Origin: Macrostomum lignano | Lineage: Eukaryota | Direction of reading: 5' to 3' | Assembly: GCA_002269645.1 (NCBI GenBank) | Contig: NIVC01000404.1 | Coordinates: forward strand, 124,001-188,000 | DNA: 64,000 nt | Shown: in pieces, positions 4,875 to 63,664 of the stretch | Layout of the letters: every line of letters begins with the position of its first letter | Position numbering within the stretch: the stretch's first letter is position 1 | Program-made: the position numbers and the translations under genes | The notes under the pieces: generated by a model | Seen by the model: the letters and a program-made list of their open reading frames with translations, nothing else | Told to the model about the DNA's origin: nothing | Database searches by the model: none

Positions 4875-5381
4875 CTGAAATATGGAATTAAAAAAACGAG
4901 GGTGTGTGTGTTAGAAGCGAAACAGTTTTCGAAATAAAAGTCATAATTATTGGTTTTGTCACGTGGCCCGAATTTTTCGACGAAACGAATTTCGAATTAA
5001 CGATCCAACAGCATTGCAACCAGTTAGCTGTCTGCAAAAATATGAGCAGCTGTTTCGGGGTGGCGCGGGTAAAATTGAGAAAAAAATTGTAAATAAACAA
5101 TCTAAAATATCCTAACTAAACTATAACTATCCTAGTTGTCAATCATTGAATAATTATTGCAGAATAATTTTGTTTTCAATATATTAAAAACATTTTCAAA
5201 CCTGTCGCTTCGTTTAATAAATAACTCGATGAGCAACAGACACAGGTGAGGTAGAGGCGATTTCTCTACAAAATAGAAACAAAAAATAATAACAATTTCG
5301 TGGTAGTAGATTAACAAAAAAGCATTCTAAGAAATGAAGCCTAAACGATATTTTTTCAAGATGAATAGGACTAAAGTTGCC

Positions 5382-7471: not shown

Positions 7472-7867
7472 TCATTTCTGCATTTGAAAATGATCAATAA
7501 AATCGTTCTGCTCCTTAGCCGTAGCCTCCAACGAGCGAAGCTGTTTCTGCAGCCGATCTAAGCTAGCCTGCTTCTCCAATATCTGAGCCTGCAACTGCTG
7601 CACCTGCTCCTGACGCTGGGTGCTCACGCATTTCAATTGGTTCAGCGCACCAATGCGTATCATTTTCTCTTTTTCAACTTCAGTAGCAGCAACATCCACA
7701 GCCTGTAGCAGGTTGGACACTAAGCGTTGAAAGTCTTCAACAGTGATGGTAAACTGGCCACATTTGTCTTTGAGATCAGTAGACTCAGTTGACACTTCTG
7801 GTTCGATAATGTGCAGTGTGTTTAATTCATCAATATTTAAACCAAGCTTTGCTAGAATATCGTCCAT
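7472..7867 (-). CDS. IFT20: Intraflagellar transport protein 20 (131 aa, intronless CDS)
   Basis: MDDILAKLGLNIDELNTLHIIEPEV...EVEKEKMIRIGALNQLK...QLQAQILEK...EQNDFIDHFQMQK is collinear with human IFT20 (GLHFDELNKLRVLDPEV...EAENEKMKAIGARNLLK...EQNEFIDQFIFQK). The second ATG (7867) gives the canonical length. Confidence 0.96.
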   Translation of the reverse strand: MDDILAKLGLNIDELNTLHIIEPEVSTESTDLKDKCGQFTITVEDFQRLVSNLLQAVDVAATEVEKEKMIRIGALNQLKCVSTQRQEQVQQLQAQILEKQASLDRLQKQLRSLEATAKEQNDFIDHFQMQK

Positions 7868-14967: not shown

Positions 14968-15144
14968 TTCACTTTTATAGATTGAGCTACTCTGTCTGAC
15001 CATTAACTACTTTGTTGATTTAGAAAAGTTGAATACGCTATGCTTTGGGTGCAGTTGTATGTGTTTAATATATCCAGTTTTTAGTTTACGATCTCAACTA
15101 TTTTTTACGATTAGCTCAAATTTTTCACTTCACAGTCTTTGAGC

Positions 15145-16110
15145 ATTATCTCTCTCTCTCGCTCTCTATCCGACCAACTCCTCACCCGTCTCCGCCAATG
15201 TACATTCTCTCTCTTTCCGACCAATTCCTCGCACCGTCTCCAACAATGTACATTCTCTCTCTATTTGACCAACTCCTCACCCGTCTCCAACAATGTACAT
15301 TCTCTCTCTATCCGACTAACTCCTCAACCCCGTCTCCAACAATGTACATTCTCTCTCTCTATCCGACTAACTCCTCAACCCCGTCTTCAACAATGTACAT
15401 TCTCTCTCTATCCAACCAACTCCTCACCCGTCTCCGCCAATGTACATTCTCTCTCTCTCTTTCCGACCAATTCCTCACCCCGTCTCTACCAATGTACATT
15501 CTCTCTCTATCCGACCAATTCCTCATCCCGTCTCCGCCAATGTACATTCTCTCTCTATCCGACCAATTCCTCACCCCGTCTCCAACAATGTACATTCTCT
15601 CTCTATCCGACCAATTCCTCACCCCGTCTCCAACAATGTACATTCTCTCTCTATCCGACCAATTCCTCATCCCGTATCCGCCAATGTACATTCTCTCTCT
15701 ATCCGACCAATTCCTCACCTCGTCTCCAACATTGTACATTCTCTCTCTATCCGACCAATTCCTCACCCCGTCTCCAACAATGTACATTCTCTCTCTATCC
15801 GACCAATTCCTCACCCCGTCTCCAACAATGTACATTCTCTCTCTATCCGACCAATTCCTCACCCCGTCTCCAACAATGTACATTCTATCTCTATCCGACC
15901 AATTCCTCACCCCGTCTCCAACAATGTACATGCTCTCTCTATCCGACCAACTGCTCAACCCCGTCTCCAACAATTTACATGCTCTTTTTTCCGACCAATT
16001 CCTCACCCGGCTCTTCCAATGTACGTTCTCTCTCTATCCGACCAACTCCTCACCCCGTCTCCAACAATGTACATTCTCTCTCTATCCGACCAACTCCTCA
16101 ACCCCGTCTC
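15145..16110. repeat. 48-bp pyrimidine-rich tandem minisatellite
   Basis: Unit TCTCTCTATCCGACCAATTCCTCACCCCGTCTCCAACAATGTACATTC, about 20 copies. Confidence 0.96.
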
Positions 16111-16924
16111 GATTTGGTTCGGGTTTCAATTTTTTATTTACTTTGTTAATCACTTCAAAGAATATCCAGGCGAAAAGCTCTACTAGAGCTGCCTTAGTTA
16201 TATATTATATTTTCTTTATATTTTAAAGTTTGGTTATAAAAATCAAACATTGTGTGCCATGCGTTTTGCTATTATTTTTTCTGCTTCTAGCCTAACAGAA
16301 ACAAAAAACGATATATGTTTGTACATAAAGTTCTCTAGTGTGCTGTCTAACTCTATTAAAATTTTAATAAACGTTCTATTCAATCAAATAAATATCCTTG
16401 TTTATGCAACGTTTTTTCATCAATTTATATAAATCAGAAAATTCAAACTGCTGTTTATTAAAAGATTGAATTCATTTTATGAAGTTGTTTTCGATACATA
16501 TCGGCCAAATTAAACTAAATTATAAATCTGCAGTTAAATGGTATTTACTGAACTCTCGCTGCATGAGGAATACTTCACTTTCTACTGTGATAATCCTGAT
16601 AAGGTAAATATAAACTAATTTAATTCAATTCATATCCGACACCTTTGCTAGTTGCTTAATTCTCATTTTAAAGTTGTATTAATAAAACTATCATCATTTT
16701 GTCTTGTAGTGCGATAAAACCCAGTTTTTCCATCAAACTGTAATTTAACAGTTCCTCAAGTTCAGTTGTTGGGAAAACTAAATTTATTGACAAACTTTGT
16801 TATTTACTGGCAGACAGGCGGCCAAAAATAATCTTTGAGAAGTTAGTTTTGAAAAAAGGCTTTGGGTTATTGTGCACACTCTGGGGATGCAATGAAATCC
16901 CACCTATTAAAAAATCCCATCAAG

Positions 16925-17560
16925 CTAGTGAAATCCCACACAGTAAAATCCCACCTATTGAAATCCCACACCGTGAAATCCCACCTGTTGAAATCCCACA
17001 CAGTAAAATCCCACCTATTGAAATCCCACACCGTGAAATCCCACCTGTTGAAATCTCACTCAGTGAAATCTCACCTAATGAAATCCCTCACAGTGAAATC
17101 CCACTCGTTGGAATCCCACCTGTTGAAATCCCACCTAATGAAATCCCACACAGTAAAATCCCACCTATTAAAATCCCACACCGTGAAATCCCACCTGTTG
17201 AAATCTCACTCAGTGAAATCTCACCTAATGAAATCCCTCACAGTGAAATCCCACTCGTTGGAATCCCACCTGTTGAAATCCCACCTAATGAAATCCCACA
17301 CAGTAAAATCCCACCTATTGAAATCCCACACAGTGAAATCCCACCTAATGAAATCTCACACAGTAAAATCTCACCTAATGAAATCCCACACAGTAAAATC
17401 CCACCTATTGAAATCCCACACAGTGAAATCCCACCTAATGAAATCTCACACAGTAAAATCTCACCTAATGAAATCTCACACAGTAAAATCTCACCTATTG
17501 AAATCCCACACAGTAAAATCCCACCTATTGAAATCCCACACAGTAAAATCCCACCTAGAG
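16925..17560. repeat. 15-bp tandem minisatellite (GAAATCCCACCTATT / AAAATCCCACACAGT) with higher-order structure
   Basis: Visible periodicity; a 150-bp block recurs at 17041 and 17191. Confidence 0.95.
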
Positions 17561-17656
17561 AAATCCCAGTTAGGGAACTCGAACTCAACGGAATTCAGTA
17601 TTCAACACTGTCCTATCCTATTTTTTCATCTACATGTACGTCTACTTGTATACCAA

Positions 17657-18188
17657 ATGGCCAATCAGTCCCAGCAGCAGCTCGTCTGCCTTGACGATTT
17701 CGAGCGCTGGGCCCTGGCAACCCTGCCACGCAAGACTCTCGATTATTACCGCAGCGGCGCCAACTGCGAACGAACTTTACGCGACAATGTTAACGCATTT
17801 CAAGACTGGCTACTGATGCCGCGAATGCTGGTTGGCGTTGCTAACAGGAGCGTGGCAACTACGTTGCTAGGGCAACCGGTTTTTGCGCCGATTGGAGTTG
17901 CGCCGACTGCGATGCAGAGGCTGGCTAGTGATAGAGGCGAGCTGGATACGGCAGAGGCTGCCGCGGAGGCTGGGGTGTGCCTCACTGTCAGCACCATCGC
18001 CACTTGCAGCCTGGAGAGTGTAAGATGCGTGTGACATGTCTGTCTGTCTGTCTGTCTGCCTGTCTGTCTGCCTGTCTGTCTGTCTGCCTGTCTGTCTGTC
18101 TGTCTGTCTGTCTGACTGTCTGTCTGTCTGTCTGTCTGTCTGCCTGTCTGTCTGTCTGTCTGTCTGACTGTCTGTCTGTCTGTCTGCC

Positions 18189-18221
<33 letters not shown>

Positions 18222-18223
18222 GA

Positions 18224-18265
<42 letters not shown>

Positions 18266-20582
18266 TATAGTATCTTGTTGTCAGTGAACATTGCCCTTCC
18301 ACATACCCAACCCTCGCGCATTGACCAGATCGCCCAAGCCAACGGTCCCAGCGGTCTGCGCTGGTTCCAGCTGTACGTGTACAAAGACCGTGAGCTGACT
18401 AAGCGCATGGTGTCGCGAGTGGAACAGGCGGGCTACAAAGCACTGGTGCTGACGGTGGACACTCCGATATTCGGTCAGAGATACGCGGACGCGAGGAACG
18501 GCTTCGGGCTGCCGGGACATCTCAAGATGGCCAATTTTGAAGCGGAAGGAGGCAAAGAGGCTGAAGGCATGGGCGGCAGCGACGGTGGCAGCGACGGTGT
18601 GTCGGCTCTGACCCGCTACTCAAGCCAGCTGTTCGATACCAACCTGAGCTGGGCTGACGTTAAATGGCTGACTGAGATTTCTAAGCTGCCGGTGAGTTTT
18701 TTGCGTCAAGAGAGGCAGGAGGACTGTAGCCTCGGGCACCTGGCATGGAGCAACGCGAATCGTTAAGGTGCCCGCAACCAGTGCGCTGAGGCAATTCTGA
18801 CTCCTGAGCAGTCGTACACACGCTTGCACAGGGTGTTCAGTAGCCATAGATTTCTAATTTCCAGACATGTACACCCTCCGTGCCTTGGGGGTTGGCCCTC
18901 ATCCCGAAATGTTAAAATCCCGCAATTTCCCTAAACCCGAAATTTCCCGAACTCAAAGTTTCCAAACCGAAAATTTCCCAAGTCCGAAATTTTTTTTTCA
19001 AATCGGAAATTTCCCTAAACCCAAAATTCTTATAAATCCGAAATTTTACAGCACCGAATCTCGCACTGGTAGCATATGAGACTTAACAAACCCGAACTTT
19101 CAAAAACCCGAAATTACAAAAATTCGAAATTTCAAAAACCCGAAATTTCAAAAACCCGAAATTTCAAAAACCCGAAATTTCAAAAACCCGAAATTTCAAA
19201 AACCCGAAATTACAAAAATTCGAAATATCACAAACCCGAAATTTCACAAACCCGAAATTTTACAAACCCGAAATTTCACAAACCCGAAATTTCACAAACC
19301 CGAAATTTAAAAAACCCGAAATTTCACAAACCCGAACATTCACTCGAATGTTTACCTTATGGTCTGGTACATGGTATGTAGCTGGGGCTAAGCGTTAACG
19401 TATCATGTAAAGTCAAGAAAATAAAAGAATTAAATTTTGTTACACATTTTACAATAAGCGCCTTGCGTGTATGAAAGTAAGATACTTCAAGTATATGCAG
19501 ATAATTTAGCTATAATTATTTCTGCTTTGGCATACACAAATATTCGTCGTGTTGCTTCTTTATTTCAATTATTATCTAATATTGCTTTTGTTAAAATTTA
19601 CAAAATAACAAATCTAGCCGCACAAAACACACATCTTAAGGTGCCCGATTACCCTCGAAAAGTATAAAATTCTCTTAAATTTGAAAATTTGTGGAATTTC
19701 ATGTTTGTGAACTCTCGAATTTTTGAAATTTCGGGTAGTTAAAATTTTGGATTTTTGAAATTTCGGGTTTTTTAAATTTCGGGTTTTTTCAAATTTCGAG
19801 TTTTTGAAATTTCAGGTTTGTAAAATTTTGGGATTGTAAAATTTCAGGTTTGTGAAATTTTGGGTTTTGAAATTTTGGGTTTTGAAATTTCGGGTTTGTA
19901 AAATTTCAGGTTTGTGAAATTTCGGGTTTGTGAAATTTCCGGCTTTTGAAATTTCGGGCTTTTGAAATTTCGGTTTTTTTAATTTCGAGTTTTTGAAATT
20001 TCGGGTTTGTAAAATTTCGGGATTGTAAAATTTCAGGTTTGTGAAATTTCGGTTTTTGAAATTTCAGGTTTGTAAAATTTCAGATTTGTGGAGTTTTGGG
20101 TTTGTGAAATTTCGGGTTTGGGAAATTTCTGTCCGTAATGACCTTTTATCGACCTCGCCCCCCAGGTGATAGTAAAAGGCATCGTCCGTCCGGAGGACGC
20201 CCAATTAGCGCTCGACTCCGGCGCCTCAGCAATCTGGGTGTCGAACCACGGCGCCCGCCAATTGGACACTGTCCCGGCCAGCATCGACACGCTGCCGGCT
20301 ATTGTGTCCGCCGTGTCCGGCCGAGCCGAGATCTATCTGGACGGCGGCATTCGGACAGGTACGGACGTTTTGAAAGCGCTGGCACTCGGCGCCAGAGCGG
20401 TGTTCCTTGGCAGGCCGGTGCTGTGGGGCCTGTCCCACAGCGGCCGGTCAGGCGTCCGTCGCGTGCTGGACATTGCGATCAAGGAGCTCGACTTGGCCAT
20501 GGCGCTCAGCGGCGAGACCTGCGCGCGGACTGTTCGACCGGAACTGGTGGTGCACAGGCGCAGGATGAAGAGCAAGCTGTGA
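17657..20582 (+). CDS. HAO1: Peroxisomal FMN-dependent (S)-2-hydroxy-acid oxidase (glycolate oxidase). Exons 17657-18019, 18329-18691, 20166-20582; 380 aa
   Basis: LDDFE...[69 protein letters not shown]-terminal PTS1 SKL. Both introns are phase-0 GT-AG and restore collinearity. HAO1 versus HAO2 cannot be resolved by eye. Confidence 0.95.
18038..18265. repeat. (TGTC)n microsatellite in HAO intron 1
   Basis: Directly visible. Confidence 0.97.
18866..18901 (-). mobile_element. Short fragment of the SINE family found at 3596 and 51767
   Basis: CATGTACAC...GTGCCTTGGGGGTTGGCCCTCA matches the 51767-51985 copy. Confidence 0.6.
18910..20130. mobile_element. Foldback-type element in HAO intron 2: inverted arrays of a 15-bp unit around an AT-rich spacer
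   Basis: Left arm (AAACCCGAAATTTCA)n at ~18910-19336; right arm is its reverse complement (TGAAATTTCGGGTTT)n at ~19690-20130. Confidence 0.8.
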
Positions 20583-20607
20583 GCAACCGCCTCTCTTCCC
20601 TAGACAT

Positions 20608-21140
20608 TTGGGGGAATGTGACATTTTGGTGGAATGTGACATTTTGGTGGAATGTGACATTTTGGTGGAATGTGACATTTTGGTGGAATGTGACATTTTG
20701 GTGGAATGTGACATTTTGGTGGAATGTGACATTTGGATGGAATGTGACATTTTGGTGGAATGTGACATTTTGGGGGAATGTGACATTTTGGTGGAATGTG
20801 ACATTTGGATGGAATGTGACATTTTGGTGGAATGTGACATTTTGGTGGAATGTGACATTTTGGTGGAATGTGACATTTTGGGGGAATGTGACATTTTGGT
20901 GGAATGTGACATTTGGATGGAATGTGACATTTTGGTGGAATGTGACATTTGGATGGAATGTGACATTTTGGTGGAATATGACATTTGGATGGAATGTGAC
21001 ATTTGGATGCAATGTGACATTGTGGGGAATGTAAAGTTATAAGGAATGTGACGTTATGGGAAATGTGACATTGTGGGGAATGTGACATTGTGGGGAATGT
21101 GAAGTTATAAGGAATGTGACGTTATGGGAAATGTGACACT
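20608..21140. repeat. 18-bp tandem minisatellite (GGAATGTGACATTTTGGT) immediately 3' of HAO
   Basis: Visible periodicity. Confidence 0.96.
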
Positions 21141-22170: not shown

Positions 22171-23868
22171 TCAAATGCAGTCAGGCGATGCCAGGTACAC
22201 TAATCTGTCTAGTTTGTTCATAAATCTGCAGCAGCACTGCTGCCTTGGTCTATTACCGACTCCATCTTCGCTGTTTCTACCGCATAAAACTGCTCGATCT
22301 CCGCCGACGCCCTTCGCCGACGACGTTCCATTCCGACGTCGACGAATCCATTCGGCAATGCCGGCTACGGTGGAAGCGACATCTTTGCCTAAATTTGAGC
22401 CGCTATGAGTTTTAGTGAGCTGCTCAACCAACAGGTCGGTCATCTCTGGAGCGCCTAACGACCATAGCAACAGATGGTTGCTAGGTATGCTTAGGCGCGG
22501 CGTTTCTACAGATGCTGCTGCACTGTATGCTGTAGTCGTTACTGGCGTGAGCTCTCCGACAACAAACACTGGAGGTAGGCGGCCTCGCTGACCAACAGCC
22601 AGAGTTGCTAGAATGTCCGTCAGGGTCACGCTGCCGCCACTGGCCGCTTCGAAGTGTTCTCGACCGCCGCGGCCCAGGCAGAACACGAAGCAGCAGTCGC
22701 GTCCACTTTCAGACATCGCCGAGGCCGTCTGCCGCAGCAGCCGTAGCGTCTCTCTGCGCGACTTGTTCCAGTGGATAAACACGGTGAACTCCAGCCGGCT
22801 GTTGAACAGGCGGCCGATTGCCGCTGCCGCGTCACGAATCTGATTGGCTCGGGCCAGCAGCTGGCGCGGACTGCCGCCGTCCGCTGCGGCAGCATCCATA
22901 TCGGCTTCTTCATCAGAGGCAGGGTCAGCTTCAGCAGTTGGTTGTGTACCGCTTGTTGTTGTACCATTGGCAGGCGTTGGACAGTTTGAGTTGCTGTTCA
23001 GAGCGGCGGTCGATGCGGGCAAAAGGCTGGCATAGTTGGCAAACACAACGCATAGGCCGTTACACGCCTGCAGCTCAAGGGGCGGCTCCTGCGGCTGCTG
23101 CGGCTCTGAATGTGCTGTCAGTCTCTGCGTGCTGGCTGACCTATTGCTGGATGGTTGAATTCGGATCAAGAATGTTGCTTCAGTTGATACAGAGAGACAG
23201 AGAGTAGTTACAGGCTTTTTCCCACCTAAATTTTAGTTGTAGACCAATTCTTTCTGAACCACCCTCATTGACAATGTGCGAATCAGGCTATACTACTCGT
23301 AGTTAGGCAACCTATAGCGCAAAGCCAGAGCGTCCCATAGCCAGTTATGAGGCACTTCTGCCCATTTCGCTGACTCTTGAGCATATAATCCTGGACACAC
23401 AAGCCCCGCTTGTGAGAGTGAGATCTTGTCACAATTATTGTCTGCATACTTCGCACAAGTACAGCATTGAATATCTTACCTTGTTGATGAGCTGGCGTCA
23501 TTAAAACTGCGAGCACTGTTCGTGATTTCGATATTGTTGACTTCATCCGTCTGCAGTCGGTTTCCGTTTGAGTTTGTCTTCGACGATTTCGCCGCAGATG
23601 CTCCTACTGGTGCTGCTGTTGTCGGCGAGTTCAACAGGTCCTGCAGTTCCGCTATCAACTGTCTAGCTTTGGACACCACAGTCGAAGGATTGTCAGCATC
23701 TTCTGGCTGCAGGGGCGCGTATAATGATTGCCTTTGTCGTGGCGAGGTCCTGCAGTTACTATTTGTAGTATGAGTGTAGCTGCTTGCTGAGTCCTGTATA
23801 GCTCCAGTCGCAGTTCTTGCCGATGTTGAGGCTAAGCTAGTGACCTCGGAGCTGTTACAACTTGTCAT
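22171..23868 (-). CDS. Caspase-fold protein lacking catalytic His and Cys (pseudo-caspase) with a Ser/Thr-rich N-terminal region. Probable exons 23868-23480 and ~23146-22171
   Basis: Caspase elements in order: GLCVVFANY (beta1), DAAAAIGRLFNSRLEFTVFIHWNKSRRETLRLL, DCCFVFCLGRG (SHG site, H to R), LPPVFVVGEL (KPKLFIIQAC site, C to L), IPSNHLLLWS, terminal MNKLDRLVYL. Donor AG|GTAAG at 23480; the exact acceptor is uncertain. Confidence 0.7.
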
Positions 23869-27292: not shown

Positions 27293-27851
27293 ATCAACAT
27301 GTACTAGAGACTACAAATAGCTATCTAGCTACATGTATATATAGCTTAATTTATTTAGAAGCTGATTTTTTGTAGTGTCAAATAAAGTTTCTATCATCGG
27401 AATGTATATTAACAACATATTGTGCAGTTTTCGGAAATAAGTATATGCTAAAAATACAGAAATAAATTTCTTTGCAAGAAATGTTTAAATATTCCATTTG
27501 CCTATCTTGCAAATGCATTCGGAAGTGTTACCATGATGCTCACTTGCGCTAGGCTTCTGCGCCAGTTTATCACAATATATCATGATATTAAAAAGTGCTT
27601 ATGCATGGACCTGGCCTGATTTCCAAGTGCCAAAATGTGCTACAAGGGAACCTAACGTACAAGCAAAACCCTTTCCTGGACACCCTTTTTGATGCGACCA
27701 ACTATTAACAGCTAATTTTCTAAATGTACTGTTTGATTGAATCTATGCATTAACTTTTCTGTGGACAAAGCCCACGAGATTAAGTTCCGAAGAGGGTTTA
27801 CAGGCGACAACAACCCGCTTTACGGGTGTGCGGGTAGAGCCTCTATGTGAC

Positions 27852-28023
27852 CATGCTTGGGCGCAACCTTGGGATTCCCTCGGCCATTTCTATTGGCAAC
27901 ACACACATGTAAGTCGCTATTGGACGGAATAGTAGTCACGTGACTGCTCTCAGCCAATAGCGACTTACATGTGTGTGTTGCCAATAGAAACGGCCGGGTG
28001 ATTCCCAAAGTTGCGCATGTATG
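27852..28023. mobile_element. 172-bp hairpin MITE, P-element-like, same family as 39234-39509
   Basis: Perfect 8-bp TSD TATGTGAC (27844-27851 / 28024-28031). Right end GTTGCGCATGTATG is identical to the TIR of the 39234 element. 37-bp perfect inner inverted repeat; shared GCGACTTAC motif. Confidence 0.85.
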
Positions 28024-29249
28024 TATGTGACTATGACCCGAAACAACAGCCCAGCAGTTGAACAACAGCCGTAGGCTTTAATCAGTCACAAGCATAATCA
28101 GCTTGGCTTCAATTTCAGTTCCCTCACCCAACTCTAAAAGACTGCAGTCTGTAATTACTAGTTAAACGTCGACAAAAAACTAAATAACTAATAAAAAAGC
28201 GCATTGCAAATTTGATTGGTGCACGAGTTAGGAGGCTGCTGACAAGGGTCCAACTAAAAGAAACTAGAAAGCGACCAAGCCACGTTTATAGACTAGATCC
28301 TTTTTGACAATTTAAATGGAATGGACAGTAAATTTAGCACACGAACATGATTTAACCAATTTTAGTAGTCATTTAGTAGTCGTTCCAAAAAGGAATTGGT
28401 TACTATTTCGAAAGATTAATCTAATTGTCTTTTTTCAGTTAGCTTAGGTCACTTTGTTTCCTTTAGTAGTTTGACATACTAACAAAAACTTATTTGTCGA
28501 ATATATTGTGCCATGGCCATCGGATATTAATCTCTAATCTCTCATAACCAAATAGTAAATGACCCAATAAGGATGATGAATACAATACATGAAAACTAAG
28601 CCAAACAATCTTTACAATATAATCACCATTACAGTTGCGCAGGGATTTTAGCTTGTGCAAAACAAAAAAATGTCATACAAAATTGTCTAATCAAATTATT
28701 AAGGCGTCAGTGTTTTACAACAAAAATTTAGAAACCAAAAGATGGAAAATTTAGCAAAATATGCTCTCACATACAAAACAAAAATAATAATAACTCCATC
28801 ATTAAAGTTACTGTGTATAAAAAGAACAATCATATTTTCTTCAGTTGTCTGAGTGCGATAGCGCAGTATTTTCAAATGACCCTATTAGTGGTTTTGAAGA
28901 ATGGAAAAGAAAACCAGCGCATTTCGTCAGAAATTCACTAAAAAAGGCTTCCCTTCTGGCTGCTGTACTGTGGGTCCTTAGATACAACCGGTTTAGTTTA
29001 TGGCCAAGCCATCAAGACTTACGCTGATTGTGAATGCAAAAGTATTTATAATTAAAATATACGCGACACGCAAGGCCAATCAATAGCCAGATAAACACCA
29101 AACACTATGGCACTAAGAAGATAGCATCAGCAGGTAGCAGGTAGGTATTGAGGATTCAAGGGATTATCGGCACGCTTTGAGCAGGTTACTGGTAGCATCT
29201 GCAGGTAGGTATTGAGGATTTAAGGGATTATCGGCGCGTAGGACTAGCA

Positions 29250-32200
29250 CTAAAGATGGCAATGAGAACAGAAGAAGTTCGGCTGCTTTGCAGCTTTAGC
29301 GAAGTCAGCGTCACTCAAGCCTAAGCAGTTGGCATGGTACCACTTGCTACAGTGGTCGCACATAATTGACAAGTCAATGGAGAAATATGGCGTTCTGCAG
29401 TCGCAGATGAGGTCAGTGCGAAAACATCGAATTGACAAATTTCGCACTTTCCGTGAAGAATCTATTGGAAACGGTAGCATCTTCTTTTCATCAAAACAGC
29501 GGATAAGATGCTGTCGTAGCTTCGTTGCACTAAATAGGCAATTAACGGGGTTGGTTTGCGTGGCGATGGCTACTGCGTAGGCAATAGTATAAAGGCCACA
29601 ATCGTGAGCACTCTTTTGGTGAGCCACGTTTGCATACTGCAGAGTAATAGATGAGCATTCAAGTCTTAAAAAAGACGTTATGTCGCGCAGTAGTGAAGAC
29701 GACATCTTTGGTGGATGCGAGTCAAAAACCGTCAGACCTTCAGGGTAGTTTGATAGCAGGATCCAGTGATCACAACCAGATTCGTGGAAAATCTGGACAA
29801 AGGTTTCTTCTAAAAATGTTTTTTTAACGTGGGGGGACAGGTTACGAACTAAATAGCTTCAGTTTCCTAAAATTCTAAGCTAAAACCGCTAAACATTGTT
29901 ACATCTGATATAATTGATAGGATAAAATCAAATATATTAGGCAAACGCCTACAATTAAATTATTAAATGTACTAGCTTTATCGTCTTTGAAAATGAACAC
30001 TACATATAAAGTTATGTATATTTGCTTTTGTTTAATTTTTGTTTAAAATACTTCATACTTAGATCATTTCTATGGTTTAGATTGCTGTATTATAGTACTT
30101 ACAATAGTTTAAGGATATTACTCACCCTCTTTGACATGCACGTTGCGATCCTTCAATAAGGACGGATTCAGTAAGCCGGCAATTTTTGGCCATCTCGATC
30201 TGATAAGGCAAGAGGCTGCTGCCATGACATCTCCAGTCAGTTGACCATGGGGAGACTGAATGGACTGTCTTAAGAATTAATGTGAAAGAGTTCAATGTAT
30301 ACACTTTCGAAAATAGAGAATGATAGAAAAAAATAAAATAACTTTGTTTCATACCTGTCAGCATTTCGTAATCCCAAGATGGGAATCCATGCGTCAGACT
30401 CGGCCACGAGCACATCAGGCCCCATAAAGTCAATTCCAGAGGTTAAATAAATGCCTCTAGGGGCCGAACGAAAGTAATCATTTACTGTAGGCTGTACGTT
30501 AAGAGCTCCAGTAAACGTAGCATTGACCTTTCCAGCGGCCTCTGTCCCAGCGCATCGATCTTCAGTGGAGCCGGCGCATCGATCTTCAGCGGAGCCGGCG
30601 CATTGATCTTCAGCGGAGCCGGCGCATCGATCTTCAGTGGAGCCGGCGCATCGATCTTCAGCGGAGCCGGCGCATCGATCTTCAGCGGAGCCGGCGCATC
30701 GATCTTCAGTGGAGCCGGCGCATCGATCTTCAGTGGAGCCGGCGCATCGATCTTCAGCGGAGCCGGCGCATCGATCTTCAGTGGAGCCGGCGCATCGATC
30801 TTCAGCGGAGCCGGCGCATCGATCTTCAGTGTAGCCGGCGCATCGATCTTCAGCAGACTTAGCTGTACATTCTTCAGCAAGAGCGGCATTATTATCACTA
30901 GAAGGCTCCGCGTCAGATTGGTCGCTTGCGCTCTCAATATGGCAGACTTTCTTGATGCCACGAACTTCAACGTCGGAGTCGGATGCCGACTTGTCTAAGT
31001 CAATATCCCTTGGACGCTTTCTCCCTGATCGTCTATTTTTTTTGGGAGCAAGTTGCGTCGAAGCAGTTGAGCATTGCCTGCTTTAAAGTTTCCCTTAAGG
31101 TTAATTGACAGTCGACAAGCAATAATGTGGTAGCACGTCCCACTTGCGGGGCAGGTACATTTCTCCTTTGGAAAAAGGCGCACACTGTGACAATCACCTG
31201 TTGTACCAATCACAGTAAATGATCCTGTACTAGGAACACCAACAACTTTATTCTGGCGAATTAAATCTTCCGCGCGGGCCATCTGAGACTTAGGAACGTG
31301 ACAGCTTGGTGTCTTAGCTTTTCTATCGCTCGCATCGTTTTCATCGACTGGCCTCCTGCGATGCTTGATTCGCTGTACGACTTCGGCTGGTTCAATGAAT
31401 GGGTGTGAATTGACTGCTGGCACCGCCTGGGCTAACTGTTGAAATTCCGGATGCAGCCGAAAGCTACCGAGGTTTGCAAAGGCCCGATTCGTTTCGTGCA
31501 GTAAATATGCTTGAAGATAGTACACGGTTAGTATCGCCTCGTCCAAACGAACTTCTTTCCAGTTCTGAGCACGCTTAACAACAGTGTTGAACGCCTCGGC
31601 TTGATTAATAGTCACTCCACTAAAGGCATTGTACAAACCAAGTGGCTCAAGTACCCAGCGACCGACTTTGCACTGAACCATGGCATGCCACTGAGAAAAG
31701 TAATAATCACAAAGTTTTGCACTCCACCTAGACGAGACATCCTCAAGCTTGCTGCAATACTCTTCGAGAGTTTGAGAGCGCCAAAGATCCTCGAGTTGGG
31801 ATTTGATACCATTTTCTTCAGAGGAACATCCGTTCTTATGCAGCCAAAACTTGACATCGCGAACGATGTGGATCCAGCATTGAAGGTGGCTCATGTCACT
31901 CAAAACACGGTTCACCGCGTTACTTATTGCTACTTCACAATCCGTGACAAGAACACCTCGATTAGTAGACAGGGAAGGTATCTTGCGCAACATCAGTGAA
32001 AAAAATCACTGTGGATGGCTTCTAGCTTGCGGTCATGAAGTAAAAATGCAACTGGCAAAACAGGCATTACATCTTGTTGAGAAAGAAGCAATGGATGGCG
32101 AAAGGTCAGGGTCGAAAGAAAAAATCACCTAGGTTAAAAGTGGTATCGTACGCAAGTAAGTTCTTGCATGGCAAATTTTGGCACTGCAAAATTTGGTCGA

Positions 32201-33390
32201 GCATTGTTAGCATTTCAGGAAGTGCAACAATTACACCAAGATGCGGTAGAAAATCCATCTGATGAATGCAGTTAACAAGATCCGCTCCAAGTTCGATACA
32301 GTTTACAACGTCGTCATTTGATAATCGAAGATTCTGTAGGACTACTTTTCGTACATTAGCCACTTGGTAGTGATCACGCGGCTTTAACACTGCTTCGTGT
32401 TGAGGATCAACAGAGGCAGACGTTGTGGCAGTCTGATACACCTGGCTCGGAGAACTGCCTTTTTCAGCCAGGCGCTGCTGCAATTCCTTCAGAACACTAG
32501 GACACGTTTGTTGAAATGGATTGGCAGAAGGGCTGCGACAATTGCCATGGGGCTCAAGACTGCCTTGGCTATGGTCACCAATATAAACAATAAGCCGTCG
32601 GCGAAGCAGCTCTGAGCTACTACTGTCAATGAGTTGGTAGACATTTCGACGAAAGAGCGGCTGACCTTGCTTATCTGAATCCTTGACTCGAGGAATAAAA
32701 TAAGTTTTCTTAACAAGAGGTGACTGGGCTGGAAGCAATTTAAATGCGCCATTGTTCCGCCACTGATATTGGTCACAGAGATAGTCGTTGCACTCTAAAA
32801 TAAATGGGTTGGGTGGATTCATATATACAATTAAATAGCATAAGTGCATTATTTTGAGAACTAATTTTTTAATTTAAATTGGCACTCTAGACATGCAAAC
32901 GAATAATTTAAATATTTGGCTAATTCATTATACATTTGGCAAAAAAAGATTTGCCATTAATTTTGGACCCACAAAGGTACATTTGTACTATATATCCAGT
33001 TAAAGCAGTTTGCAATCAATAGGACAAGTTGAGGAAGTGAAAAAGGTGCCATATAAAAAGAAAGTTGAAAAATGGACATAAAAAGTGGCATGAGTCAGTC
33101 ACACCTCAGCTTAACTGTCAGGTTGGCTGGGTGTACCAAACCCCAGCAGGTAGGCCAGAGCCAGAGCCAGAGCCATATTAACAAATCAAAGTAGAAAGTA
33201 AAAGCAATGTGCACTGAAAATGATGTTTTCACTTACTGCTCTCATCATCAAAGTAGTACAGATAAACTTCTCCACCTTTTGGACTCACTGGTGGAAGAGT
33301 GATACAAGAATCTTGGCTAGTTTCAATAATTATCTTTTGAGCTTCTTCTGGGCTGAAGTCCCCTTGAATGACTTCCAATGGGGCAATCAT
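29250..33390 (-). mobile_element. Mutator-like (MULE) transposase gene fused to SWIM, a tandem-repeat linker, Ulp1/C48 protease and PHD finger. Exons 33390-33237, 32794-30355 (three frameshifts), 30268-30126, 29848-29250; ~1112 aa if corrected
   Basis: PPVSPKGGEVYLY, DYLCDQYQWRNNG, YDTTFNLGDF and VTDCEVAISNA...HLQCWIH (MULE DDE region); CTCPASGTCYHIIA (SWIM); RSGRKRPR; VQIFH..DHWILLS..VFDS..QKSAHDCGLY (Ulp1 His/Asp/Gln/Cys); CDCR...CDHCSKWYHANC...FFCSHC (PHD). All three introns are GT-AG with compatible phases. Element termini were not located. Confidence 0.9.
30551..30852 (-). repeat. 24-bp in-frame coding minisatellite (DRCAGSTE x ~12) inside the MULE gene
   Basis: Unit GATCGATGCGCCGGCTCCACTGAA on the minus strand; the frame stays open between the RKRPR motif and the Ulp1 exons. 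Confidence 0.85.
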
Positions 33391-38705: not shown

Positions 38706-39233
38706 CAGTATAGTATATGTAGTTGTTTTAATCCATTGTTTATCTAGTGAGTCAAATTGTCTTATAATTTGTTTTATTGTATAAAATGCATGCTATTCAA
38801 ATGGTTGGAAATAAATATCCATGTATCTACTATTAAGACTTAACAAATTAACAATTATCAATTATCAACAAAATTAACAATCAACAAATTGCTTACAATC
38901 AAATCAACAAATTTCATTAATTGAAGTCAACAAATTAAACAAATTGGTTGCCCTCTGTAACAGAAACAAATCCAGCAATAAATCAATTATATCTGCATAG
39001 AACAGCTACTATAATGAAGTCCTGGTAAAAATTTGAAAGTGATGCATGCTCACATGCAAGCAATAAAGTTTTCAATTTTAATTCATTATTAAAGTTCATT
39101 AGTAAGAAGTTGTTATATTTGCATGTTTATTGTTTTAAACAAAAATATTAGTTAGCCATTTAAGTAAATTCAAATACATTCATAATGTTGTAACTTCTTG
39201 TCAGACTTTTTTTGTTCTTTCCTGTGTCTTTGG

Positions 39234-39509
39234 CATACATGCGCAACCCCCCTGATTTACACTGGCCATGCGACTTACTTTTTGACCAAAAATGCGACTT
39301 ACCTGTGAAAGAAACCCTAAAGCAAAATAAACGCTTATTTGGGTAAACGGCAGGAGTAACTATGACCGTCTTATCAGGCTTAAATGCCTCGGCATCTAAT
39401 TAGTACTACGTCCGTATTCTTTGGGGTGGCATTTTTGCGACTTACCCCTGGTCCACCACAATTTATAGTGGCCAGATCGGCCAGGTCGGCCAGCAGTTGC
39501 GCATGTATG
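39234..39509. mobile_element. 276-bp P-element-like MITE carrying a 28S rDNA fragment
   Basis: Perfect 14-bp TIR CATACATGCGCAAC and perfect 8-bp TSD GTCTTTGG (39226-39233 / 39510-39517). Three internal GCGACTTAC motifs. CAT..ATG termini with an 8-bp TSD fit the P superfamily. Confidence 0.9.
39341..39404 (+). other. 64-nt 28S rRNA-derived fragment (helix 69-71 region, R2/I-PpoI target); not an rRNA gene
   Basis: 52/64 identical to the conserved eukaryotic 28S sequence GGGTAAACGGCGGGAGTAACTATGACTCTCTTAAGGTAGCCAAATGCCTCGTCATCTAATTAGT (recalled). Eight of the 12 mismatches are contiguous at AGGTAGCC. Confidence 0.9.
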
Positions 39510-39970
39510 GTCTTTGGTTATTAACTTTGTCATTACCATTAACAATGAATTTGTTGTTGACTTACAAAATTATTAACACAAATTTGTTAATCTATTAGTA
39601 CAAAAAATCTTAATGGCAGTCTGGTAATGTACACCTAAAATGTAATGTAGCATAAAATCTTAATGTTTATTAATGCTTTTTAATAGATTAATGCATATTA
39701 ATGGACTGGTGCCCAACACTGATAATCTATGTAAATCCGTGGGATATATATTGCTGATGTATATATAGTATAATAGTTTCTATGTTATTATTTATTATAA
39801 ATGCCTATAAAAGCTATATAAAAGATATAATGGTTAAACATTAAAAATATAAAGACAAAGCAAAAATGATAAATATTTAACAAGTATTACTATAAAAATA
39901 AAAAGAAGAAAGGAGAAATGTAGAAAAATACATTTAAAACAAGAAACCAAAATGTTATAGTCTATAAGAA

Positions 39971-40740
39971 GCTCTATTGGAATAAGTTGACAAAACGCGG
40001 ACAACCGTCCGTCGCATTTTTGGATTCTCCTGGTGTTGTGTCGCGCGACAGTGGTGTCAAGTGGTGTGTTGCGTCGCGTGACATTGTGGAAACCTGGTGT
40101 TGTCATGCGTCGCCTCGCGTGACACTGTGGAAACCTGGTATTGTCATGCGTCGCGTCGCGCAACGCGACAGTGTGGCAACTTGGCGGCTGGCATCGTCAT
40201 GTGTCGCATTGCAGCCTGGATCTGCAGCCAAAACCTCGCAAACTGTGTTTCATTCATTGTAATATGTTCACGGTTGTTTCTCGGTATTTAAATGTTTCAA
40301 ACATGTTTGATAATAACTAGTTCTTGAACTTTTCTTTTTTATTTTGACGGTAAAGTAACTAATACTTCAAATATAATTTTTAGAAATGTTACTTGTTATT
40401 TACAATGCATGCGCTTTTTTTCTAAGTGTTGTACCTTTATTGTTTTACTGTTTATTCTTTTTAAATTTCATTTCTTTTTCCGCGAAGTTGAAAGGAATAC
40501 TCTTATCCATCGTCCCATGGTCTCGGTGTCGGGAGTGAACGGCAGAATGGGAATTGTCAATTGCAACGTGGCTGCTGTGGTGTCCTCCCCCCTGGTCATT
40601 TGGTCAACAGACATCGGTGTTGCGTCACATGTCGCCACCCCCCAGTCAACAAAATTTGGTGTCATGTTGCGCTTTTGAGGGCACAATTTTGGCACCCGTG
40701 TCGCGCGTCCGCGGGTTTTTGAAACTTGTTCCAATAGGGA
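39971..40740. mobile_element. ~770-bp non-autonomous TIR element with internal CG-rich repeats
   Basis: Imperfect ~35-bp TIR (GCTCTATTGGAATAAGTT...CGCGGAC versus reverse complement TCCCTATTGGAACAAGTT...CGCGGAC). A further CCCTATTGGAA end lies at ~41222. Superfamily not determined. Confidence 0.65.
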
Positions 40741-42557: not shown

Positions 42558-43383
42558 GTTTGCTTGCCGAAGTTTGCTTGCGGAATTTTGCCTGCCGAAC
42601 TTTGCTTGCCGAACTTTGCTTGCGGAATTTTGCTTGCTGAAGTTTGCTTGCCGAACTTTGCTTGCAGGAAATTTGCTTGCAGGAACTTTGCCTGCCGAAG
42701 TTTGCTTGCCGAGCTTTGCTTGCAAAATTTTGATGTCTGCTTTCTAGAAATTTGCAATCACACAATCGCAAGGTTTTAACTTGCAGAATTATTTTCTTGT
42801 TTGCTTGGTTGTTTTGATTGCTTGTAAAGTTGGTCAGTCAATTATTACTTACTACAGATGCTTTGCAAGTGGATTCTTATCAGGGTCGACGTAAACTGAC
42901 TTGACACTAAGCTTTCAAACTAGGCTTATAGAGTTTCATTCTAAGAATGTAGTATATAGAATGCTTAGAGATTTAGTATAGGTAGATAGGGATCGGTAAC
43001 AGTATAAATATTTGTAGTTCCTGATTTCAGCACGATTGAGCAGGTATTATAATTGCAGTGATGCTAATGTAATATGCATATACTAATAATATTTTAGTAT
43101 ATAAAATGTAATTAATAATCCGCCATATCCTCATACAAAGTCATAAAACTATAAACGACTTCCACGAATCTTAGAAAATGAAAATTAGAAATACAAGAGC
43201 TCAAAAGCAAAGTTCGGCAAGCAAAGCTCGGCAAGCAAAGTTCGGCAAGCAAAGTTCGGCAAGCAAAGCTCGGCAAGCAAAGTTCGGCAAGCAAAGCTCG
43301 GCAAGCAAAATTCCGCAAGCAGACTTCAGCAAGCAAAATTCGGCAAGCAGACTTCGGCAAGCAAATTTCCGCAAGCAAATTTC
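42558..43383. mobile_element. Foldback-type element: inverted arrays of a 15-bp unit around a ~470-bp spacer
   Basis: (TTTGCTTGCCGAACT)n at 42558-42725 and the reverse complement (AGTTCGGCAAGCAAA)n at 43204-43383. Confidence 0.8.
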
Positions 43384-49011: not shown

Positions 49012-51127
49012 ATGGCTACAAACCAGAAGCAGCAACAGCAGGAACAGCAGCAGGCTCTGCAACAGCCGGGGTCGCAATCGCAATCTCAGAACGGCGGCCG
49101 CGGCGCTACCGGTAGAAGCGGCAGCGGCAGCTACAGCAGAAGTCGCGACAGAAGTCGCAGCCCGCCGCCTCGGCGTCCAGGCAGTCGAGATCGGGATCGA
49201 GACAGGGATAGGGATAGAGACAGGGACCGGGATAGAGGCAGAGACAGAGATCGAGAGAGGTCTCGAGACAGCAGAGATCGAGATCGTGACAGGGACAGAG
49301 GAGGCAGACGCGGCCCTTCGTTTAATCGCGACCGAGACCGGGACGAGAGAAGCAGCGTCGGTGCAGCTCAGGCGATCGGCTCATCCATGGTGCCACCGAG
49401 TTTCCCTCAGCAGCAGCAGCAGCAACCTGCACCAGAATCGACGCCTCATCAATCCAATCAGAGTCAGCATCAGGTGCCTTTGCAGCGTCATCCGCCGTTG
49501 CATCCAACTGAGCGAGCATATGACGCTGCCGTAATCGCCTCGTCAACTGAAGTTCGGTAGGTTTTTGTATAATTCTACTATGAGCCTGTCTTCAAGGTCC
49601 TAATTATTGTCTAGATGTGTTTTAATTAGGTCCTGGTTTTAAATGGTTTTAAAAGGACCTGTCTAATAGTATAAAAATGCGTTTTATGATGTAGAATCTG
49701 TGTTTATGTCCTTGACAGTAGAATTGTGTCTTAATGTGTCCTTGACAGTGAAAATGTGTCTCAAAGTGTCCTTGACAGTAGAATTGTGTCTTAATGTGTC
49801 CTTGACAGTGAAAATGTGTCTCAAAGTGTCCTTGACAGTAGAATTGTGTCTTAATGTGTCCTTGACAGTAGAATTGTGTCTTAATGTGTCCTTGACAGTA
49901 GAATTGTGTCTTAATGTGTCCTTGACGGTAGAAACGTGCCTTAATCTGTCCTTGACAGTAGAATTGTGTCTTAATGTGTCCTTGACGGTAGAAACGTGCC
50001 TTAATGTGTCCTTGACAGTAGAATTGTGTCTTAATGTGTCCTTGACGGTAGAAACGTGCCTTAATGTGTCCTTGACAGTAGAAATGTGTCTCAATGTGTC
50101 CTTGACAGTAGAATTGTGTCTCAGTGTGTCCTTGACAGTAGAATTGTGTCTCACTGTGTCCTTGACGGTGGAAATGTGTCTCAATGTGTCCTTGACAATA
50201 GAATTGTGTCTCAGTGTGTCCTTGACAGTAGAATTGTGTCTCAATGTGTCCTTGACAGTGGAAATGTGTCTCACTGTGTCCTTGACGGTGGAAATGTGTC
50301 TCAATGTGTCCTTGACAATAGAATTGTGTCTCAGTGTGTCCTTGACAATAGAATTGTGTCTCAGTGTGTCCTTGACAGTAGAATTGTGTCTCACTGTGTC
50401 CTTGATGGTGGAAATGTGTCTCAATATGTCCTTGACAATAGAATTGTGTCTCAGTGTGTCCTTGACAGTAGAATTGTGTCTCAATGTGTCCTTGACAGTG
50501 GAAATGTGTCTCACTGTGTCCTTGACGGTGGAAATGTGTCTCAATGTGTCCTTGACAATAGAATTGTGTCTCAGTGTGTCCTTGACAGTAGAATTGTGTC
50601 TCAATGTGTCCTTGACAGTAGAATTGTGTCTCACTAGATTGTATAAATGTATCCTCAACAATAGAATTGTGTCTCAATAGATTGCAGGAATGTGTCCTTG
50701 ACAGTAAACATTTGTGGACTGGGATCTAAGAGTGGAATGTCTTATAGTAGATTTTATACATGATACTGTTTCTTGAGTAGATACGAGCGTTGTCTTTCAT
50801 AGCTCTTCACGACTGCCATGTAGGAGAATATGATGGATGTTTGATTTCAATTTTCAATTTTCAGACAGTAAAATACTTAATAGTACATCTGTAATGTAGT
50901 ATACACATTGTGGGATATTTCTCAGTCAGTATTTATCAACCCCTCCCCGTTCTCTTTAATCCTGATAAGATGTCTTGCATTTTAATTACAGTTGGCCAAA
51001 TTTTTAAGTTCACGGAGCTGAATTGGAAGCCATCAGCATTTTGATCGTTTGAATTGCAATCATGGTAGACTTATAAGTACTCGTATATATATGTAGTGGC
51101 TAAATCTACATTCTACATTTCACTAGA

Positions 51128-55577: not shown

Positions 55578-55966
55578 AGTCAGTGCCATATTTAGGTGTC
55601 AATCAGTGCGATATTCAGGTGCCATATTCAGGGGTCAATCAGTGCCATATTCAGGTGTCAATTAGTGCCATATTCAGGTGTCAATCAGTGCCATATTCAG
55701 GTGTCAATCAGTGCCATATTCAGTTGTCAATCAGTGCCATATTCAGGTGTCAATCAGTGCCATATTCAGGTGTCAATCAGTGCCATATTCAGTTGTCAAT
55801 CAGTGCCATATTCAGGTGTCAATCAGTGCCATATTTAGGTGTCAATCAGTGCCATATTCAGGTGTCAATCAGTGCCATATTCAGGTGTCAATCAGTGCCA
55901 TATTCAGGTGTCAATCAGTGCCATATTCAGGTGTCAATCAGTGCCATATTCAGGTATCAATCAGTC
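55578..55966. repeat. 23-bp minisatellite immediately upstream of GLO1
   Basis: Unit TCAGTGCCATATTCAGGTGTCAA. Confidence 0.96.
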
Positions 55967-56033
55967 ACATTCAGCACTCCAATCCCAACCCCAATCCCCC
56001 ACCTGGCAACCAGCTGTCACCTGTCAATCAATC

Positions 56034-56982
56034 ATGGCCCTATCAAAATCCGAGCTCGCCGCTCTGTGCAAGCCGCCACCGCCTGAGACCAGCGGCTTCA
56101 TCATGCAGCAGACGATGCTGCGAGTCAAGGACCCTCGCCGGTCGCTGGACTTTTATTCCTCAGTGCTGGGGATGCGGCTGCTCGGCAAGTTCGACTTCCC
56201 CAGCATGGCGTTCTCGCTGTACTTCATGGGCTACGCTGAGGAGGCCAGCATTCCTAAGGGCGACACGGAGCGCATCGCCTACCTGTTCAGGCTGCCGGGG
56301 ACTGTGGAGCTGACCCACAACTATGGGACAGAGTCTGACCCTGACCAGGTGTGTGTTCATGGACTGCTGAGTCCCAGTGTCTGGACTGCTGAATCCCATT
56401 GCCATCCCACACCAGTCCCATTGCCATCCCACACCCATCCCATTGCCATCCCACACCAATCCCATTGCCATCCCACACCAATCCCATTGCCATCCCACAC
56501 CAATCCCATTGCCATCCCACACCAATCCCATTGCCATCCCACACCAATCCCATTGCCATCCCACACCAGTCCCATTGCCATCCCACACCAGTCCCATTGC
56601 CATCCCACACCAATCCCATTGCCATCCCACACCAATCCCACTGCCATCCCACACCAGTCCCATTGCCATCCCACACCAACCCCATTGCCATCCCACACCA
56701 ATCCCACTGCCATCCCACACCAATCCCATTGCCATCCCACACCAATCCCATTGCCAGGCCTACCACAACGGCAACTCGGACCCCCGCGGCTTCGGCCACA
56801 TCGGCATCAGCGTCCCGGATGTCGCCGAGGCCTGCAGGCGTTTCGACCGACTCGGCGTGAAGTTCGCCAAGAAGCCGGACGACGGCAAGATGAAGGGCCT
56901 CGCCTTCATTCTGGACCCTGACGGCTACTGGATTGAAATCCTCAATGCCGGCAGGATGGTGGAGATCGCCAAGGTGGACTGA
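56034..56982 (+). CDS. GLO1: Lactoylglutathione lyase (glyoxalase I). Exons 56034-56348 and 56758-56982; 179 aa
   Basis: [20 protein letters not shown]; FSLYFMGY; [12 protein letters not shown]|[22 protein letters not shown]; [24 protein letters not shown]. Metal ligands Q, E, H, E are present. Phase-0 GT-AG intron. Confidence 0.97.
56392..56756. repeat. 22-bp minisatellite filling the GLO1 intron
   Basis: Unit ATCCCATTGCCATCCCACACCA. Confidence 0.96.
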
Positions 56983-57384
56983 CAAGGATGCTCAGCTTCA
57001 GCTCATAAATCTGACCGAACAGCCCACAGCAGCAGTGACTGCAGCCGTCAATCCTCCTCTCTGCTCTTCTGTGCTGCACCGCCCTTTGTGCCGTCAACTG
57101 TTAGCAAACTCTGATGTACCGCACTGCACCAAATCAGTGACTGTCTTTGCCTTAAAACTGATCATTTTATACCTGCCTTTCTGCAGTTCACCTTCAAGTT
57201 GTTGCTGACAAAGGCGAACTTTAATCTGAATTCCGAATAATTAAAATATATTCAGTTCATCCCAATGAGAAATATTTTACTAATAAATCTGATTGCTCAA
57301 ATATTGTCAATCATAAAAAAAAAAGTTGTTTTCACAACTCAGTTTTGACTCTGAAGCCAATTGGAAATAATTCTGGGCAGATGG

Positions 57385-59661: not shown

Positions 59662-60434
59662 CAACACAGAGTCAGTGTGTGCCTGCCTTAATAGCAGCCC
59701 GCTACCCAAGGCCCAGTGGAAATGTTTTCTTCTAGAAGACAAGATAATCAGAATTAAAATGTGTAGCTTTGAATTGAAAAATTCCAATCTCTCAGAATGC
59801 AGTTATTACAAAATTGCCATTTTAAAATACTTTTTAAACCATATTGGATCCAGCAAACTAAAGGCACTTTAAGTTTATCAGTGAGTGACAGTTGTTTTAC
59901 AATGTCTTTTCATGGTATATTATGTATTTTGATATGTATATATTTGATGTTAACTGAGTGTAAGTCAAAAATCGCTGCTAACAAGGCGCATGGTGCTACT
60001 ACAGTATTCGATTAGCGATGATCAAAGGTGTGAATAGAGTATGCTAGCCACTATTAGGTGAACTCATCATAGTCTCAAAGTCGGTCAGGCTGCTGCGAGG
60101 TACTCCGTGATGCAGAAGTCGGAATCTGCACATCCTGACTGACGCTCTAGGAGCTCCACTGCTTGCGAGGTGCTCTGGAAGGTCGGCGGGTTGAGGAGAG
60201 AAATTCTGGAATGACCCGCAATTCTAGCCAATCAGCGAGCAGCGGAGGCTAGATAGATAGCCAACCACAATTCCCTTTGGATCACGTCCCCAGCCAGCCA
60301 ATCAGCGAGCAGCGGGGGATAGAAAGATAGCCAACAACGATTCCCATTGATCTCGTCCCTTGGATCAGTGGGCAAGAGGGGGTAGATACCCAATAATCGC
60401 CCAGCCAGCCAATCAGTGCTGACCAAACTTTCAC

Positions 60435-63664
<3,230 letters not shown>

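Follow-up and report, generated by a model that had tools for sequence, protein, structure and literature searches.

A non-autonomous DNA transposon of Macrostomum lignano carrying a decayed 28S rDNA fragment with an eight-base replacement across the R2 cut site

The 64-kb stretch of Macrostomum lignano DNA analyzed here (the window) is metazoan in content, with ORFs for IFT20, TROVE/Ro60, a caspase and a glypican-like protein. Several of the host genes have unusually long uninterrupted exons, situated at 7472–7909 (minus strand), 12935–14654 (plus), 17700–20582 (plus) and 22171–23169 (minus); these long-exon genes include a complete IFT20 in one ORF and a caspase-domain ORF, and there are long-exon ORFs that resemble hydroxyacid oxidase as judged by eye. 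The TROVE/Ro60 ORF is 100% identical to M. lignano A0A1I8GVM1. Long minisatellite and microsatellite arrays are present at exceptional density (9–501, 5334–6250, 15139–16226, 16849–17700, 20600–21088, 30482–30998, 49649–50680, 55583–56985, 60282–61736 and 61820–62444). Simultaneous open frames are found in these arrays on several strands, a (GACA)n-type array at 61.8–62.4 kb included, and some of the arrays lie inside or beside genes, as at the glyoxalase-like exons at 55.8–57 kb. Two tandem arrays of 14-bp units, with about 12 copies each and approximately 480 bp apart, are found at 42559–42723 and 43205–43383, a short way upstream of 44167, where the glypican-like ORF is located; TTTGCTTGCCGAAC, the unit of one array, is the reverse complement of AAGCAAAGTTCGGC, the unit of the other, and the inverted pair could form a long fold-back. 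On the minus strand between 29250 and 32849 there are MULE/Mutator-like ORFs at 30995–31993 (with weak Pfam Transposase_mut/MULE matches) and 32106–32849, adjoined by a PHD-finger ORF at 29250–29705; we found no clear terminal inverted repeats for this MULE-like region.

The element of interest is 276 bp long and lies at 39234–39509; we will refer to it as MITE A. Its ends are 14-bp terminal inverted repeats (TIRs), CATACATGCGCAAC at 39234–39247 on the plus strand and GTTGCGCATGTATG at 39496–39509 on the minus strand, which are complementary at 14/14 positions. It is flanked on both sides by GTCTTTGG, a perfect 8-bp direct repeat (39226–39233 and 39510–39517) that constitutes its target-site duplication (TSD), and the 276-bp element with 14-bp TIR and perfect 8-bp TSD that had been proposed in a first-pass annotation of this DNA is thus confirmed. 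Its coding capacity is nil, with stops in all six frames. By its TIRs, TSD, small size and noncoding interior, MITE A is a bona fide non-autonomous TIR transposon. Subterminally it contains two direct copies of ATGCGACTTAC (39268–39278 and 39292–39302, plus strand), which include the 9-mer GTAAGTCGC on the minus strand, and a third copy, TTGCGACTTAC, at 39435–39445 on the plus strand, approximately 65 nt from the right end. Expressed as an 11-mer, (A/T)TGCGACTTAC occurs three times near the ends of the element, with 0.11 occurrences expected.

The non-coding DNA around MITE A is AT-rich and full of repeats, and neither an ORF nor an RNA family is found close by; the nearest long ORF is about 4.7 kb away, with MITE A upstream of it. 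An Rfam search of the whole window returned no family at gathering thresholds and, near MITE A, sub-threshold noise only, and no paralogous empty site for MITE A was found within the 64 kb. Approximately 500 bp downstream, at 39990–40240, a GC-rich island lies in the AT-rich DNA, with tandem units of 33 and 41 bp in which GCGTCGCG/GTGACA is frequent. The island includes a 13-nt identity, CCAAAAATGCGAC (40011–40023, minus strand), to the subterminal region of MITE A, and is without the termini of the MITE A family; it probably represents another repeat.

A second member of the same family, MITE B, is found at 27852–28023. It is 172 bp long and palindromic, with approximately 86% identity between its arms, and is flanked by a perfect 8-bp TSD, TATGTGAC, at 27844–27851 and 28024–28031. 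The right end of MITE B (28010–28023) is identical to the MITE A terminus, while its left end is degraded and reads CATGCTTGGGCGCAAC. The family terminus is thus identical over 14–15 nt at three ends in 64 kb, against 0.39 expected when up to 2 mismatches are allowed, and the 9-mer GTAAGTCGC occurs five times, against 0.27 expected, with all occurrences inside MITEs A and B. Copies of this 9-mer are placed roughly 55–65 nt from the right ends of the two elements, the position of the third copy in MITE A (39435–39445) being matched by an equivalent position in MITE B, and the subterminal motifs are presumably transposase-binding sites. The family is recognizable by the terminus CATACATGCGCAAC together with subterminal GTAAGTCGC.

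Comparison of the two elements is instructive in two further respects. The sequence that they have in common is the terminus and the 9-mer alone, so that no fewer than two non-autonomous lineages of the family, unrelated to each other, are present in the 64 kb. With terminus and 9-mer shared, the transposon family is real, and as MITE B has no rDNA-like segment of the sort described below, the 28S piece is cargo of one lineage, not part of the functional backbone of the family. The orientation of the subterminal motifs also differs: the two in MITE B form a symmetrical, inverted pair, whereas in MITE A all three are in one orientation, those in the left arm being the reverse of the arrangement in the left arm of MITE B. 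The left arm of MITE A is thus rearranged, a sign of aberrant repair in the history of this element.

The superfamily to which these elements belong is most simply stated as P or hAT, since both would fit the 8-bp TSD. The two independent duplications, GTCTTTGG and TATGTGAC, fit the P superfamily (7–8 bp) and fit hAT (8 bp). Elements of the hAT superfamily begin with 5'-YARNG and have the TSD pattern nTnnnnAn. Measured against that consensus, the terminus CATAC of our two elements is off at positions 3 and 5, and in this sample of two each TSD fits one of the two preferred positions of the nTnnnnAn pattern, on one strand. The description of MITE A as P-type in the first-pass annotation is a candidate assignment, since the 8-bp duplication and the CA start fit P but fit hAT equally, and no transposase, such as the THAP-domain enzyme by which P elements are mobilized, is linked to MITE A within the window. 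No ORF of the window resembles a transposase apart from the MULE-like ones, which lack the MITE termini, and the MULE-like element at approximately 29.2–32.9 kb was rejected as an autonomous partner as it has no matching termini. Membership of the piggyBac/Pokey group was likewise rejected, as neither GTCTTTGG nor TATGTGAC is TTAA and both insertions are outside rDNA.

The interior of MITE A includes a 64-nt segment derived from 28S rDNA, located at 39341–39404 in the sense (plus) orientation and corresponding to positions -36 to +28 relative to the R2 nick. As the 28S reference we used the published 84-bp 28S/R2 target duplex (bioRxiv 10.1101/2024.11.11.623112), aligned ungapped and in register. 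The nick, TTAAGG/TAGCC, is given by the sequences of cleaved oligonucleotides, in which the bottom strand reads ...GGCTA/CCTTAAG... (PMC13000458), and the insertion site as originally annotated, TTAAGG/TAGC, agrees with this. The segment is identical to 28S at 52/64 positions. The twelve mismatches are G-25A, T-10C, C-9G and T+16G, together with a single block of 8 nt from -3 to +5, and outside this block the match is 52/56, all of which bears out the earlier reading of the segment. The piece is also centered on the R2 site as had been claimed, with 36 nt upstream and 28 nt downstream of the nick. It occupies positions 108–171 of the 276, approximately 107 nt from either end of the element, and the homology ends sharply at -36 and +28, positions beyond being essentially unmatched; no extension into the flanks of the 64-nt segment was found. 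The rDNA origin of the segment is clear. Aligned locally, the 84-mer scores 34 at this segment, its highest value; the runner-up position in the window scores 12, and 30 shuffles averaged 12.3 with a maximum of 15, and chance resemblance is rejected on this basis. The Rfam LSU models give no hit on the segment, such short fragments not being reported by these models.

Helix 69 of LSU rRNA has a 5-bp stem, GGGAG/CUCUC, and AAGGUAGC is universally conserved. When placed on this structure, three of the four scattered substitutions (G-25A, T-10C and C-9G) map to the helix 69 stem, where each would break one pair without compensation, and the conserved AGGTAGCC is replaced. Because these pairs are broken and uncompensated and the conserved octamer is gone, the piece reads as decayed pseudo-rDNA and not as a functional rRNA variant; the same two features led us to reject a natural rRNA variant as unlikely. 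Outside the block the divergence is approximately 7%, if the host 28S is canonical. As divergence of this order is found beside perfect TIRs and a perfect TSD, the 28S piece is probably older than the insertion of MITE A at this site, and it may either have been carried within the element for a while or have originated in an old rDNA pseudogene. The combination of divergence and perfect ends is compatible with a propagating, multicopy subfamily of cargo-bearing elements.

The block of eight contiguous substitutions, at 39374–39381 on the plus strand, changes AGGTAGCC to TCAGGCTT, or, read more widely, TTAAGGTAGCC to TTATCAGGCTT. When 12 mismatches were distributed over 64 positions, a run of at least 8 contiguous mismatches was seen in 0/200,000 simulations, and the block is for this reason ascribed to one event. 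It replaces 8 nt by 8 nt, so that length is exactly preserved, and the nick, between -1 and +1, falls inside it, as it would for 7 of the 57 possible placements of an 8-nt block (~12%). A fold-back or templated origin from nearby sequence was considered and set aside, as by eye there are only 4–6-nt matches, which is the chance level. The I-PpoI site, the 15-bp CTCTCTTAAGGTAGC, corresponds in MITE A to CCGTCTTATCAGGCT and differs from it at 9/15 positions, and the TTAA used by Pokey at the 28S site reads TTAT.

The consequences of the block can be considered in terms of target recognition by R2Bm, as worked out by cryo-EM and biochemistry. Recruitment of this protein depends on the retrotransposon upstream motif (RUM; -34 to -22, consensus A-31WWWGCNNNA-22), whose distance to the cut matters, while nicking needs the insertion-site motif (RASIN), T-6TNANNT+1; mutation of T+1 abolishes nicking, and mutation of T-6, T-5 or A-3 severely reduces it (PMC10499050). 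In MITE A the RUM equivalent, at 39343–39355 on the plus strand, retains A-31, G-27, C-26 and A-22 and reads AACGGCAGGA from -31 to -22, the sole change being G-25A at an N position (native 28S also departs from the WWW of the RUM), and the spacing from RUM to cut site is unchanged. The RASIN, by contrast, reads TTATCAG from -6 to +1, with A-3 changed to T and T+1 to G, so that the nicking motif is lost. By the rules for R2Bm, which is one insect element of the D clade, other clades reading the target differently, the MITE A site is predicted to bind R2 protein yet to resist nicking. Because A-3 and T+1 are lost, the latter change being sufficient under these rules to abolish nicking, the cut site is very probably uncleavable, and to call it cleavage-resistant, as the first-pass annotation did, was a fair inference. 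We also considered whether the segment could be the remains of a 5'-truncated R2 insertion, but rejected this as target-primed reverse transcription leaves an exact /TAGCC on the downstream side, and the junction here lacks it.

Further copies were sought in several ways. A 55-aa open frame across the cargo gave no candidates when used as a protein probe, and a composite 320-aa probe of the remaining frames gave nothing at E <= 1, both in collections that are without M. lignano DNA. A literature search with the terminus and the variant string found no mention of either. The variant 21-mer CTTATCAGGCTTAAATGCCTC has two matches in JGI metagenome contigs, at L001 531–551 and L002 8104–8124, and both are attributed to chance because they have no rDNA context; an exact pattern of 21 nt is not specific enough in this collection.

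The reading that we prefer, at a probability of roughly 0.6, is that a piece of 28S was passively captured by a rearranged MITE and that one complex mutation accounts for the block. MITE A is a non-autonomous cut-and-paste transposon of M. lignano, belonging to a family with an 8-bp duplication, and in this model the 64-nt piece was most likely copied into its middle as filler. The capture may have involved a switch of template while the gap left by an excision was being repaired, or an equivalent transduplication; its source would be a unit of the rDNA or else a dispersed pseudogene of it, and the captured piece would be non-functional, decayed cargo. One complex mutation would have overwritten 8 nt across the R2/I-PpoI cut site. 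It could be the scar left in the donor rDNA by imprecise repair of a nuclease break, or a multinucleotide or patch mutation with no such connection. The sharp edges of homology at -36 and +28 fit a short copied patch, and the rearranged left arm points to the kind of aberrant-repair history that also brings in filler DNA. Also in favor are the non-coding location of the insertion, the lack of the piece in MITE B, the broken helix 69 pairs, the single-event block and the precedent of Pokey, a DNA transposon with rDNA-derived IGS repeats. A repaired cut scar captured as filler had in fact been mentioned in the first-pass annotation as a fallback, and this comes near to the reading given here; for a scar the positional evidence is weak, given the 7/57 noted above. 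Certain features run against passive capture. The center of the piece is the R2 site, the nick falls exactly within the block, and the exact length together with the intact RUM and its spacing form a combination that a passive history does not predict; the divergence beside perfect ends, too, leaves room for the propagating subfamily mentioned above. However, the location of the fragment is heavily ascertained, because an unaided reader of the sequence can recognize only the best-known and most conserved stretch of 28S, which is the R2 target, and the coincidence with the cut site is weaker than it appears.

A plausible but less likely alternative for the block is that it is specifically a nuclease scar. 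A 28S gene would have been cut at the R2/I-PpoI-type site and rejoined imprecisely, with 8 nt lost and 8 nt filled in. The nuclease could have been that of an R2 whose retrotransposition was not completed, or a different one specific for rDNA; the disabled unit, or part of it, would later have served as the template for filler in the MITE, so that here too the cargo would be passive. The position of the block, from -3 to +5 across the nick, and its origin in a single event are as this proposal would have them, and R2 is known in Platyhelminthes, with the target-specific R2Sm-A/B in a trematode and the non-specific R2NS in Schmidtea (a planarian) and Clonorchis (PMC5035012). Weighing against it, the positional coincidence has the ~12% chance given above, exact preservation of length is unusual for end joining, the downstream junction does not fit target-primed reverse transcription, and neither of two surveys of R2 (PMC5035012 being one) mentions Macrostomum, nor is there an R2 in the window.

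Three further proposals give the cargo a function. All three are unsupported, and even when taken together they are improbable. One is that MITE A belongs to a multicopy cargo-bearing subfamily that spreads many recruiting but unnickable 28S sites through the genome, dispersed and uncleavable mimics of the R2 binding site that would titrate R2 protein away from rDNA, by sequestering it or mis-targeting it. By the R2Bm rules the site has what this would call for, as -36 to +28 includes the whole of the RUM, which is intact and at its normal spacing, with the RASIN destroyed, and the divergence, apparently older than the insertion, makes a propagating subfamily possible. There is nevertheless only one cargo-bearing copy in 64 kb, MITE B being without the piece, and a very high copy number would be needed since rDNA itself supplies hundreds of genuine sites, as would an R2 in M. 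lignano. The substitutions between RUM and RASIN and the general decay of the piece argue against selection, the lack of R2 for Macrostomum in the surveys applies equally here, and the rules invoked are those of a D-clade insect element, with target reading differing in other clades. We consider this decoy proposal very unlikely.

The second functional proposal, which we find more doubtful still, is that transcription of the MITE yields a hairpin or antisense 28S-like RNA that feeds a piRNA or siRNA pathway. MITE A does fold more stably than shuffled sequences (z = -4.05), and M. lignano, being a free-living flatworm, has Piwi pathways (review PMC8191739). Such a role would, like that of a decoy, call for many copies and an R2 in this species. 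The fold, however, is driven by the 14-bp termini, with the 28S segment outside any long duplex, and the segment has 12 mismatches to 28S, the central block included. The third, that the family targets the 28S site and carries the piece to restore the target or to guide insertion in the manner of Dada or Pokey, is scarcely credible: although Pokey, which targets the TTAA of the same 28S site, has given rise to MITEs and includes sequence derived from rDNA, and some R2 lineages have a 3' UTR with a stretch resembling 28S (PMC5035012), both MITE insertions lie outside rDNA with unrelated 8-bp duplications (GTCTTTGG and TATGTGAC) that are neither TTAA, which excludes piggyBac/Pokey, nor the 6–7 bp of Dada, MITE B has no such piece, and the piece in MITE A is internal, some 107 nt from the ends and out of register with any target. 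The Dada-like mimic suggested in the first-pass annotation is contradicted by these observations, the 28S piece being internal and not terminal and the element residing in AT-rich non-coding DNA and not in rDNA.

If the piece is passive cargo, as we prefer, then MITE A is one more DNA transposon with captured host sequence, and it would be useful mainly as an annotation marker for an undescribed family with 8-bp TSDs in a flatworm model that has a very repeat-rich genome. If, on the other hand, the cargo-bearing subfamily proved abundant and its R2-recruiting bases conserved, this would be the first mimic of an rDNA retrotransposon target to be borne by a DNA transposon. Were the block a true scar, it could be evidence of rDNA-specific nuclease activity in Macrostomorpha, for which the two surveys report no R2, and a fossil of such an attack that had been mobilized by a DNA transposon.

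Among known systems, the closest mechanistic precedent is found in rearranged non-autonomous elements of the P/hAT type, such as the deletion derivatives of the P element and of Ac/Ds, and in Pack-MULEs. The filler-bearing P/hAT elements are like MITE A in having short TIRs, an 8-bp TSD, subterminal motifs and a copied, unrelated interior, but in these elements the cargo is a fragment of a protein gene or nearby sequence and not core 28S. Dada carries a terminal fragment in register with the small-RNA gene that it interrupts, so restoring the target, and makes a 6–7 bp duplication. It resembles MITE A as a DNA transposon in which part of a multicopy, conserved RNA gene is found, whereas MITE A carries its fragment internally, lies away from the target that it would be supposed to have and duplicates 8 bp. 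Repeat annotation also lists dispersed rRNA pseudogene fragments, as 'LSU-rRNA' hits, and these are like the present piece short, decayed, non-functional and outside the rDNA array; the piece in MITE A differs from them in lying inside a mobile element with intact ends and is, in principle, multipliable. When compared with the R2 target site itself (PMC10499050), the piece extends from -36 to +28 and keeps both the RUM and its distance from the cut, but A-3 and T+1 are lost, the piece is not in rDNA, and no R2 sequence is present there or in its vicinity. In theme the nearest precedent is Pokey with its mPok MITEs in Daphnia (PMC3849761), a DNA transposon with MITE derivatives that is tied to the same region of 28S and has internal rDNA-derived sequence. 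Pokey, however, makes TTAA duplications, inserts in the 28S site and has IGS repeats as its cargo, whereas the duplications of MITE A are 8 bp long, it is not inserted in rDNA, and its cargo is the target region, in which TTAT replaces the TTAA.
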